Shown here piece after piece: positions 45,952-47,619 of a stretch of 64,000 nt of DNA. The stretch is from Octopus sinensis (lineage: Eukaryota). The notes below the pieces were generated by a model. The model saw only the letters and a list, made by a program, of their open reading frames with translations. It searched no databases and had not been told where the DNA came from. The position numbers and the translations under genes were made by a program. Positions within the stretch are counted from its first letter, which is position 1, and the number at the start of each line of letters is the position of its first letter. The stretch lies in contig NW_021836924.1 in the NCBI RefSeq assembly GCF_006345805.1, positions 6,097-70,096 on the forward strand, read 5' to 3'.

Positions 45952-47619
45952 TTATTTTGTTATTTCAAAACAATGACTGGTTTTCATTTCAAATTTCTCT
46001 GGCAGAAAAAGCATATTTTCCAGTTCTTCATGGTTATCGTACGTATATTTCCTTTCATTTCTTGTATAGAATGGTATTTTCAATAGTGGGTTATTTTCTT
46101 TAGCTCCATAGTCAAAATGGGCTGTGCAGATCACGTCTGTCGTCTTGACTATATCCGGGTCTGATCCTTGGTCTCTGCTGTTTATTATTGTTTGGATGGT
46201 ACCCTTGATTGTGCCCTCGATATTGCTCTGCATTTTGCTCTCCGATGTGCCCAATATTTTACCCTTGATTGTGCCCTCGATATTGCTCTGCATTTTGCTC
46301 TCCGATGTGCTCAATATTTTAACATTGATTTTGCCCTCGATCTTTTCTCTTATTCCCGGTGTCTCCGAGATTGTACCATTGATTCTGCCCTGGATATTGC
46401 CCTGCATTTCGCTCTCCGAGGTGTACAAGATTTTAGCATTTATCTCTGCATTTTGCTCTTCGGTGATATCTCTCTGCATTTTGCTCTCCGGTGTGTCCAA
46501 GGTTTTATCATTGATAGTGACCTTCATCTTTTTCAGGACTGCAACGTCATCTCCTGTACCCTCAATTGGGTACAAGATATTTCCCTCCGTATCTCCGAGT
46601 TCGAATATGCCCGTTACTGTGCCCGTGAATGTGCCCTTGATTTTGTCTGTGACGGTCCCTTTGTATTTAAAAGACCGTTTGATTATATCCTTCAGGGCGT
46701 CTTTGAGATCTTGATTGCCCTTACTATTTAATATCTCCTCCAAAATACTATCTGTAAAATAAGTAAATTCCTCCATTTTTTTGACCCTTTCGAAAATTTT
46801 CAGTTTTTTATGTGCGGATTTCAAAACATCGCCAAGTAGTTTATTAAGCAGGAGAACAGTTTTGTGTTGGTAAGCCGTGTTATGTAGTCGATATCGTGAA
46901 TAAAACATATCATAGAAATTTTTAAGCGTTTTGTCTCTGTAGCATATTTCACCACCTATTACTTTGGACATTTTCATCATTCTTTCGTGATCAAAGGATG
47001 TTCCAATGCCAAGAAAATGGGAATCTCTGGCCAGGTAATCCCATTTATCAACGTCGATGTTATAGTCTGCATTGTTGACGATTTGGTAAAAAAATTTTTT
47101 TTTGTCAGATTTTTCTGGTTTACCAGTAATGAGATCTTTTATGAAACCAATTTCACCAGACTTAAGTTCTCCTTCAAAATGTTGGTTCATTTCAAAAAGA
47201 TGCTCTAACATTTCACATGATACATCTTCATGTTCCCACTTTTTACCTCCATTTTCCTTGCGATACTCGTTGATAATTTCTTGAAAGGCATGAGAAAAAG
47301 GCGCATGTCCTAAATCATGACACAAACCAGCGATTTCAACACACAGTATATCTCGATCAGATATTTCCAGACCGGAATCTTGCTGCTTAAGATGGCGAAT
47401 CATTTTCCCAGCTAGATGACATGTTCCCAGACAATGCTCAAATCTATTATGTGAAGCTGATGGATAAACGTAATAACACAAACCTAGTTGTTTGATATTA
47501 CGTAATCTCTGAAATTGTACTGTATTAATAATTTTAACACAGAGTGGTGAAAATTGCATGGATCCATGAATAGCGTCCTGAAAAACCTGATCCGGACGTG
47601 TATCGTTTCCGTTAGCCAT
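45952..47619 (-). CDS. SAMHD1: SAMHD1-like HD-domain dNTP triphosphohydrolase; single exon, no SAM domain, internal tandem-repeat insert
   Basis: Uninterrupted 555-aa ORF with VFQDAIHG, QFQRLRNIKQLG, SHNRFEHCLG, AGLCHDLGHAPFSH, WEHE, IDVDKWDYLARD, LHNTAYQHK, DYGAKENNP and LPEKF motifs, colinear with the SAMHD1 HD domain. Metal ligands H62, H101, D102 and D191 are intact. Confidence 0.95.
   Translation of the reverse strand: MANGNDTRPDQVFQDAIHGSMQFSPLCVKIINTVQFQRLRNIKQLGLCYYVYPSASHNRFEHCLGTCHLAGKMIRHLKQQDSGLEISDRDILCVEIAGLCHDLGHAPFSHAFQEIINEYRKENGGKKWEHEDVSCEMLEHLFEMNQHFEGELKSGEIGFIKDLITGKPEKSDKKKFFYQIVNNADYNIDVDKWDYLARDSHFLGIGTSFDHERMMKMSKVIGGEICYRDKTLKNFYDMFYSRYRLHNTAYQHKTVLLLNKLLGDVLKSAHKKLKIFERVKKMEEFTYFTDSILEEILNSKGNQDLKDALKDIIKRSFKYKGTVTDKIKGTFTGTVTGIFELGDTEGNILYPIEGTGDDVAVLKKMKVTINDKTLDTPESKMQRDITEEQNAEINAKILYTSESEMQGNIQGRINGTISETPGIREKIEGKINVKILSTSESKMQSNIEGTIKGKILGTSESKMQSNIEGTIKGTIQTIINSRDQGSDPDIVKTTDVICTAHFDYGAKENNPLLKIPFYTRNERKYTYDNHEELENMLFLPEKFEMKTSHCFEITK
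46180..46659 (-). repeat. Coding minisatellite inside the SAMHD1-like ORF (60-bp / 20-aa unit, about 7-8 progressively diverged copies)
   Basis: 46201-46260 and 46261-46320 differ at one base. Neighbouring units are more diverged. Protein unit TSESKMQSNIEGTIKGKILG. Confidence 0.9.

Follow-up and report, generated by a model that had tools for sequence, protein, structure and literature searches.

What is the long run of short repeats that interrupts a SAMHD1-like enzyme of Octopus sinensis, how did it arise, and what might it do for the protein that carries it? The question is raised by a 64,000-nucleotide stretch of contig NW_021836924.1 (positions 6,097 to 70,096 of the forward strand; this whole stretch is called the window), an AT-rich, microsatellite-rich and eukaryotic sequence. 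At 45952..47619 on its minus strand lies an intronless open reading frame (ORF) of 555 amino acids (aa) plus stop, taken from the ORF list, which encodes a SAMHD1-like HD-domain enzyme that has no SAM domain. In vertebrates, SAMHD1 is central to the regulation of nucleotide pools and acts as an antiviral factor; it is a deoxynucleoside triphosphate (dNTP) triphosphohydrolase that restricts retroviruses and DNA viruses, and primate SAMHD1 evolves under positive selection driven by viral antagonists. To our knowledge, almost nothing is known about SAMHD1 in cephalopods. On the basis of the analyses described below, we conclude with high confidence that the repeats are a lineage-specific, translated and hierarchical coding minisatellite, which originated in place within a surface loop of a tandemly duplicated SAMHD1-like enzyme. 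We also favour, with slightly better than even confidence, the joint reading that an in-frame coding minisatellite which arose in place in this lineage is now a changeable, beta-prone surface arm of a diversifying SAMHD1-like family.

The assignment of the enzyme was supported by both sequence and predicted structure. The ORF contains a Pfam HD domain (E = 2.8e-12) and its PDB sequence matches are SAMHD1 chains (E ~1e-75 over aa 3-322, with a weaker second match over aa 490-546), the best of them being SAMHD1 of Rhizophagus irregularis (9mr6, E = 9.7e-76), which likewise has no SAM domain in the crystallised chain. The AlphaFold2 model of the window protein shows a SAMHD1 fold, with a predicted template modelling (pTM) score of 0.80 and a predicted local distance difference test (pLDDT) value above 90 in the core. 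SAMHD1 chains also ranked top when this model was compared with the PDB using Foldseek (E ~1e-28), with template modelling (TM) scores normalised by target of 0.73-0.80 overall, 0.73-0.78 for human and vertebrate SAMHD1 and 0.79-0.80 for 9mr6; identity to the human and vertebrate enzymes was ~30% structurally and 40-45% in core sequence alignments. No Pfam SAM match was found in the ORF, which begins 10 residues ahead of the HD core, and the protein is therefore described here as SAMHD1-like, not as an orthologue with the full architecture. Its HD catalytic core (aa 1-319; 46663..47619, minus strand; pLDDT >90, aligned to human SAMHD1) ends in the motif RSFKY (aa 315-319; 46663-46677). The insert follows at aa 323-480 (158 aa; 46180..46653, minus strand; boundaries set by comparison with the short-linker paralogue L006). 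The rest of the C-terminal lobe (aa 481-555; 45955..46179, minus strand; pLDDT 83-95) contains DYGAKENNP (aa 503-511; 46087-46113) and was aligned with residues 499-546 of human SAMHD1 and 377-433 of 9mr6. The two motifs, which are separated by 183 residues, thus bracket the insert.

An earlier interpretation made from the letters alone (the sequence-only reading) had claimed that about 160 aa of repeats lie between R.FKY and DYG..NP, where human SAMHD1 has a loop of roughly 40 aa, and the alignment confirmed this: query residues 322 and 496 correspond to human residues 459 and 499, giving 174 aa in the window protein versus ~40 aa in human. The corresponding loop of 9mr6 has ~38 residues (339 to 377) and no repeats. 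Of 80 aligned SAMHD1-like proteins, 77 span both the R315 and the P511 column; the distance between these columns had a median of 56 residues, compared with 35 in short-linker octopus paralogues and 195 in the window, so that the loop of the sister octopus paralogues is ~160 aa shorter. Two other proteins with long loops here, P0077 of Branchiostoma (a duplicated exon block) and P0046 of a chiton (likely a retained intron), were rejected as gene-model artefacts, not repeats. The literature on SAMHD1 in octopus, cephalopods, molluscs and invertebrates, as searched, contained no account of this family, of how selection acts on it, of an expansion of SAMHD1 in cephalopods or of the loop insert, and the proteins of the family are already present in public databases under automatic names. 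The remark that this insert is not recognised from any described SAMHD1 was thus upheld by both the other SAMHD1s sampled and the literature searched.

The insert itself is a hierarchical coding minisatellite, in which 12-nucleotide (nt) units are grouped into units of 54-72 nt. Its autocorrelation at a lag of 12 nt was 0.474, compared with 0.308 +/- 0.02 in codon shuffles (z = 8.1, with none of 1000 shuffles as high), in agreement with the four-residue rhythm noticed at first sight; periodicity at a lag of 60 nt was also pronounced (z = 7.2 versus codon shuffles). By the same autocorrelation test, the 12-nt period was not seen in the HD core. Residues 321-484 could be parsed as 42 tetrapeptide rows, ~40 of them within the insert, with the DNA consensus RGC-AMA-ATN-NAG, the protein consensus [G/S]-x-[I/L/M]-x and five rows per 60-nt unit. 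The composition over 162 residues was dominated by isoleucine (23), threonine (21), glycine (18), lysine (16) and glutamate (16). Five higher-order units, u1-u5, occupy aa 375-476 (46192..46497, minus strand), at aa 375-398, 399-418, 419-436, 437-456 and 457-476. It had been supposed that the units are 57 or 60 bp long and always keep the frame; frame-keeping holds, as every length is a multiple of three, and the actual lengths are 72, 60, 54, 60 and 60 nt. Examples of peptides at unit junctions are ILYTSESEMQGNIQGR and MQSNIEGTIK. Two 60-nt units at 46200..46319 on the minus strand (46200-46259 and 46260-46319), identified by direct reading and a lag-60 identity map, are identical at 59 of 60 positions, exactly the single-base difference first reported, and identity to this terminal pair declines N-terminally (~0.8, 0.7 and 0.6), which bears out the progressive divergence of the flanking units. 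Tandem Repeats Finder (TRF) detected a period of 60 at 46200-46440 (4.1 copies, 78% matches, score 279) with 12-nt sub-periods, as well as a period of 12 at 46603-46640. The 20-aa units are clear only over aa 375-476. In the N-terminal third of the insert (aa 323-374; 46498..46653, minus strand), the lag-12 autocorrelation and TRF revealed the tetrapeptide rhythm alone (GTVT-DKIK-GTFT-GTVT-GIFE...); over aa 320-376 the autocorrelation was 0.415 versus 0.294 in shuffles, 2 of 1000 being as high, and no 20-aa unit is visible there. Thus, head-to-tail in-frame units of at least 10 nt, with periodicity above chance, run through the whole segment.

How the array arose can still be read to some extent from its relatives. 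Most octopod paralogues, including those of O. vulgaris (P0012/L006), O. sinensis (P0005/L007), O. bimaculoides (P0006) and Argonauta (P0017/P0019), have a short linker at this site, for example ...YKYKGTNEDENDQDGKHEKIFCKAVFDFG..., and no repeats, their R315-P511 interval being ~35 residues rather than 195. Like the gene in the window, these genes are intronless, without a SAM domain and clustered; they share 66-73% identity in the HD core and the flanking codons Y-K-Y-K-G-T ... D-Q-D-G ... F-D-[YF]-G. The short-form DNA reads TAC AAA GGC ACA AAT GAA GAT GAA AAT GAC CAG GAC GGA. When the window is set against L006, a short-linker paralogue, the K-G-T codons at one edge and the (N/R)-D-Q-G codons at the other are common to both, and 158 codons have taken the place of ~4. 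The 12-mer GGC-ACA-AAT-GAA of the short form is similar to the repeat unit GGC-ACA-ATC-AAG. The short form is also found in Argonauta and is therefore probably the ancestral state. In the scenario that we infer, the local 12-mer GGC-ACA-AAT-GAA at the K-G-T codons would have been the seed of the insert; it may have been amplified in place by replication slippage or unequal exchange, after which the amplified units would have diverged and later been re-duplicated as 60-nt blocks. Long microsatellites closely flank the gene, namely (AC)44 at 44188-44274, (AAT)28 at 44715-44797, (AT)41 at 45255-45364, (AGT)53 at 47982-48141 and (TG)44 at 48200-48317, and the locus is therefore slippage-prone.

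An origin by acquisition of a foreign domain found no support in database searches. When 1.84 billion representative proteins were scanned exhaustively with the insert using HMMER, only octopus SAMHD1-like proteins and unrelated periodic low-complexity proteins were recovered, and thus no donor domain. Among the former was P0131, a more diverged fragment of 109 aa with 59% identity and the same I-x-G-x-I-x-G skeleton; Macrostomum kintoun and metagenomic G-x-V-x proteins were rejected as relatives, being compositional matches. Pfam and PDB sequence searches with the insert gave only sub-threshold matches (Bactofilin, E = 0.064; GDAP1, E = 0.085), the latter being taken as a chance match. It should be noted that a word-indexed protein database was uninformative here, since low-complexity words are poorly indexed: the insert alone returned no matches, not even its own protein, and the insert with the C-terminus returned only P0003 and P0004. 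Taken together, we have high confidence that the insert grew by tandem duplication within the loop of a SAMHD1-like enzyme and is lineage-specific, so that the proposed in-frame insertion, made by tandem duplication in the loop with which the C-terminal lobe begins, is sustained.

The reading frame through the module is used. Supplements of a skin-mucus proteome of O. vulgaris (PMC11431876) list members of the subfamily identified with 11-21 peptides each (A0AA36B9F8, which is L005, A0A6P7U4P1, A0AA36B8M5, A0AA36B8J2 and A0AA36BAP0). Also listed is the peptide [K].GTIQTIINSR.[D], which is identical to aa 473-482 of the window protein, at the end of the last unit; its detection means that the module is translated. 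No further insert peptides were found among those listed in the supplement. In the same study, insert-bearing members were among the proteins more abundant in the skin mucus of senescent animals (for A0A6P7U4P1, ratios of 0.155-0.171 in the senescent comparison), which hints at regulated expression of the insert-bearing subfamily (PMC11431876).

To examine the array beyond a single gene, we compared eleven copies, that is, the window and ten copies recovered from O. sinensis and O. vulgaris (assembly GCA_951406725.2 for the latter). The window protein clusters with O. sinensis RefSeq proteins, and the window is 99% identical to the O. sinensis scaffold VCDQ01001868.1 (L004) and 96-98% identical to O. 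vulgaris OX597824.1 at 25.40-25.48 Mb (L002, L003 and L005). The insert was present in all 11 copies and in frame in at least five intact copies of two species. Besides the window, the intact copies are L004a (554 aa) and L004b (555 aa) of O. sinensis, L005 of O. vulgaris (CAI9729854, 555 aa), which is the positional orthologue of the window with 98% aa identity, and L001 on a different O. vulgaris chromosome (CAI9733954, 532 aa, 69% identity). The remaining six copies are all from O. vulgaris. L002a and L003a are frameshifted by an A8 tract in the same internal A-run, L002b has an extra A (+1) within the last units, L002c and L003b are in frame and have lost the C-terminal lobe past aa 495, and the second half of the fused model P0125 is in frame as annotated. 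The A-run occurs among the copies as A6 (in frame), A8 (frameshift), A9 (in frame) and A10, and in the window and L004b it is interrupted; in the window this interrupted form of the slippage-prone run is the A-rich tract AAGAGAAAAG of the coding strand in u3 (aa 423-426; 46342..46353, minus strand). The broken O. vulgaris copies lie at 2521-4244, 9785-11432 and 17155-18636 of L002 and at 9785-11448 and 17176-18657 of L003. The two copies truncated after aa 495 (L002c and L003b) run into unrelated microsatellite-rich DNA. These broken copies represent either many pseudogenes of the array or proteins without a C-terminal lobe.

The comparison also bears on whether the repeats are real and how fast they change. 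Mis-assembly of the near-identical 60-mers, or of the entire insert, has a practically negligible probability, and no observation in its favour was found: a second scaffold of O. sinensis and the assembly of O. vulgaris both show the same structure, and a peptide of the last unit was identified by mass spectrometry. More attention is due to the view that the array is an actively expanding decoy, whose unit number shifts fast between individuals under selection on copy number. In its favour, L002a has a third perfect 60-bp unit (+60 bp) and L001 lacks a 78-bp block farther upstream, and RefSeq isoform X2 (534 aa), which is L004a shortened by exactly one 20-aa unit, could be a shorter allele in RNA-seq data. 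However, the identical pair of terminal units occurs in 10 of the 11 copies and in two species, and the sole three-unit copy, L002a, is frameshifted. As for the RefSeq isoforms, XP_029657249 (574 aa) is a chimeric model over two tandem genes (4256-24154 of VCDQ01001868.1), its 5' portion being taken from one copy and its 3' portion from the following one, and isoform X2 is ambiguous and unreliable for copy number; the two were thus rejected as three-unit and one-unit alleles, the genomic ORFs being 554 and 555 aa. We consider such a decoy improbable, and the description of the array as actively expanding is weakly supported: the repeat is prone to indels, yet no present-day expansion is visible. 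Moreover, the near-identical 60-nt pair is also present in L004b of O. sinensis and in L005, and because O. vulgaris carries the same pair, the duplication is not a private recent event, contrary to what the 59/60 identity had suggested to the sequence-only reading. Repeat counts do differ by whole units among paralogues, and no difference was found between the positional orthologues, the window and L005. In its head-to-tail multiples of three, its hierarchy from 12 to 60 nt, its whole-unit gains and losses and its near-identical neighbours, the array resembles coding minisatellites or variable number tandem repeats of surface or interface proteins, whereas it lies within a loop of a globular enzyme, not in a mucin-like or cell-wall protein, and its copy number is almost fixed among intact copies.

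Selection on the family was then evaluated from the copies, with a neutral synonymous fraction of 0.227 taken from the substitution spectrum of the flanks; all figures are pairwise counts, not tree-based estimates, and gene conversion among the copies is likely. Between the window and L001, differences over the entire coding sequence (CDS) numbered 12.7 synonymous versus 173.3 nonsynonymous (p = 8e-9). The excess was seen in the HD core (5.8 versus 86.2; ratio of nonsynonymous to synonymous rates, omega or dN/dS, ~3.7-3.9), in the insert (4.7 versus 53.3; omega ~3.3; p = 0.005) and in the C-terminus (2.2 versus 33.8; omega ~3.8), and aa 377-482 have 35 nonsynonymous and no synonymous differences (omega not defined; p = 1e-4). 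Differences at codon positions 1, 2 and 3 numbered 73, 61 and 51, and divergence was 11.7% in the CDS compared with 3.6% in the flanks, that is, about threefold faster in the CDS. We rejected A-to-I (adenosine-to-inosine) editing or hard-wiring of a retrocopy as the cause of this coding-only divergence, given 79 transitions versus 106 transversions and homologous flanks. Among nine copies compared pairwise, omega was above 1 in every comparison with enough differences (from 1.6 up, mostly 2-5), and between the window and its orthologue in O. vulgaris there are 12 nonsynonymous changes but not a single synonymous one. Thus, unlike in human SAMHD1, an omega of ~3-4 extends over the whole protein and not over the termini only. 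The whole-gene excess is read from these sequence comparisons as the mark of a tandem family, specific to octopus, that is under strong diversifying selection; such unusually fast protein change is typical of genes in conflicts between host and pathogen. Within the insert, change was not evenly spread: the hydrophobic register position was variable in 9 of 40 columns, compared with 50 of 117 elsewhere (p = 0.024), and the I-x-G-x-I skeleton persists in three diverged lineages.

With regard to structure, the insertion site would be the loop that joins the two beta-strands opening the C-terminal lobe. In the AlphaFold2 model of the window protein, the native hairpin is extended (E317-333, E336-341 ... 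E496-503) and the 20-aa units form four long antiparallel strands (E408-418, E424-439, E444-456 and E465-480; pLDDT 53-75), while about half of the insert is unmodelled. The models thus suggest a beta-prone and partly flexible insert; in strand conformation, the [G/S] and [I/L/M] positions would lie on one face and the polar positions on the other. A more definite architecture had been proposed, namely a beta-solenoid in which each 20-aa unit makes one coil of a new, rigid binding or oligomerisation domain. The 20-residue period, which is typical of solenoid coils, and the weak Bactofilin match would fit this idea, but that match is far under the Pfam threshold (13.9 bits versus a cut-off of 27.9), there are only ~4-5 units of unequal length, and AlphaFold2 places one antiparallel strand per unit at low to moderate confidence with no stacked coils, and gives no fold for the insert of the paralogue P0002. 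Neither stacked parallel coils nor a solenoid-profile match was therefore found, and we consider a solenoid quite improbable. Bactofilin-type and other tetrapeptide G-x-[IV]-x proteins (P0132 and P0130) do share the four-residue Gly/hydrophobic rhythm and give weak profile or phmmer matches, whereas these matches are compositional (23-33% identity over many short stretches), lie in an unrelated context and score far below the cut-off; the likeness is one of convergence and not homology.

The favoured account of a changeable surface arm that arose in place would then run as follows. The product of the minisatellite would be an Ile/Thr/Gly-rich, partly flexible and beta-prone arm that projects from the C-terminal lobe, with one conserved Gly/Ile face that packs and a variable polar face that is exposed. 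As part of a diversifying dNTPase family of antiviral type that is present in tandem copies, such an arm would most likely serve as a changeable protein-protein interaction or evasion surface and probably stands outside the catalytic machinery. Several observations weigh against this account. First, the model of the window protein does not reach a pLDDT of 50 at aa 342-412, and neither does any part of the insert in that of P0002, although strands are again placed on the units in the latter; because of such low values, the insert may be disordered in large part. Second, five O. vulgaris array copies are broken, three being frameshifted inside the module and two cut off just past it, and the module is therefore also a liability, with some copies decaying. 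Third, conservation at the level of faces was not significant on the last two units (7 of 20 versus 12 of 20, p = 0.2), and the selection signal is not insert-specific: omega is the same in the HD core, so that selection does not single out the insert as an interface. Finally, copy number is nearly constant among intact copies, and the seeding scenario stands on the resemblance of a single 12-mer.

Some of these observations are equally those of a passenger expansion, that is, a neutral and largely disordered low-complexity tract in a permissive surface loop, whose frame is kept only because frameshifts would destroy the C-terminal lobe. The regions of low pLDDT and the frameshifts inside the module of three copies agree with it, as do the lack of any Pfam family or of any homologue beyond octopus SAMHD1-like proteins in the HMMER scan and the abundance of simple repeats in the octopus genome around the gene. 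Neutrality, however, predicts an omega of ~1, which the counts for the insert and for its 20-aa units contradict, and the preferential retention of hydrophobic positions and of the skeleton in three lineages is not expected of it either. In addition, isoleucine is high, at 14% of the insert, and high isoleucine is unusual for disordered regions. An omega well above 1 together with a conserved hydrophobic skeleton thus weakens the passenger explanation, which we regard as rather unlikely while still taking it seriously.

A more specific proposal, which we put forward tentatively and consider unlikely, goes beyond the favoured account: the octopus genes would form a rapidly diversifying, restriction-factor-like SAMHD1 family in tandem arrays, and in one subfamily a segment made from nothing by a 12-bp slippage repeat would have become a beta-rich arm under positive selection, which is either the surface of a contest between host and antagonist (pathogen or mobile element) or a self-association element that alters regulation of the tetramer. 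The arms-race idea gains indirect support from dN/dS of ~3 in both gene and insert, and, if the proposal is true, a structural module born de novo in an ancient enzyme would at once have been recruited into an arms race. Whichever explanation holds, the locus unites a tandem SAMHD1-like family without a SAM domain, a strong replacement excess over the whole protein and a translated segment of 158 residues, whose origin from a 12-nt repeat can still be traced in the DNA to recognisable ancestral codons; the module also accounts for the several array copies that are broken within it or immediately past it. If the insert has a function, it provides an accessible case of a new protein surface made and selected inside an old enzyme, and it would hint at an antiviral or anti-transposon system of invertebrates that is yet to be explored; if it is only tolerated, it nevertheless reveals a permissive loop in SAMHD1.

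The residues of the enzyme outside the insert were also compared with those of human SAMHD1. The HD metal-binding motif H...HD...D is represented by H62, H101-D102 and D191, which align with human H167, H206-D207 and D311; in the alignment of family members (A1), H101 does not vary, and conservation reaches 90% or more for H62, D102 and D191. The window residues that align with human metal, catalytic, substrate and allosteric-site-2 positions include H62, H101, D102, H105, H110, H130, D191, K192, Y195, D199, R242, Y250, Q251, H252, K253, R213, R228, K230, N234 and R315. The human substrate-pocket and allosteric-site-2 positions are R164, H210, H215, H233, K312, Y315, D319, R366, Y374, Q375, D330, R333, R352, K354, N358, H376, K377, R451 and K523, and by alignment all of them are kept except K523, which is replaced by R520. 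The C-terminal lobe with its DYG..NP motif is likewise shared with the human enzyme. The protein thus belongs, as judged by its residues, to the dNTP triphosphohydrolase family as a SAMHD1-like member, with triphosphohydrolase activity and nucleotide-dependent tetramerisation as predictions. The guanine-specific allosteric site 1, formed in human by K116, N119, D137, Q142 and R145, is different: Q142 and R145 are kept as Q37 and R40, whereas K116, N119 and D137 are replaced by Q11, Q14 and N32. These changes fall at 47508-47589 of the window (aa 11-37), and site 2 and the catalytic site are intact. Because residues of allosteric site 1 are replaced, the octopus enzyme may have an activator specificity that differs from that of human SAMHD1. 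A human D137N mutant has been crystallised with xanthosine triphosphate (XTP) bound (6txa). Compared with human SAMHD1, the octopus enzyme therefore differs in having no SAM domain, in being encoded without introns by a member of a tandem array with copies 7.3 to 18 kb apart, in its changed allosteric-site-1 residues, and in the 174-aa loop with a repeat module in place of the 40-aa loop at human 459-499.

Additional features of the arrays and their annotation were observed. Public gene models are fused in places: CAI9729855 (805 aa) contains two HD cores and CAI9729852 (512 aa) combines an HD with a Trypsin domain, these fusions concerning L002 from 17371 onward and L003 from 17392 onward. 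Several O. vulgaris models begin at an internal Met73 despite a full N-terminus in the DNA. Segments of the array unit recur within the window (41266-43879 and 60643-63191; 50917-51207 and 52475-52764; 51255-52294), and those at 41266-43879 and 60643-63191 each match L002 18626-21137 at ~93%. By collinearity with L004, the next gene copy would be expected just beyond the end of the window, at ~65.3-67.0 kb of the 70-kb scaffold. In O. sinensis the array has a period of ~18.2 kb; for parts of that of O. vulgaris the period is ~7.3 kb. The short-linker genes also form a second, separate cluster in O. sinensis (L007; CM016869.1, 35.5 kb), which has four full-length short-linker copies and one fragment in both orientations. 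Finally, an ORF at 27081-27686 on the minus strand of the window encodes part of a DDE transposase domain of the mariner type (Pfam Transposase_1, E = 1.9e-9) and is the remnant of a transposon.

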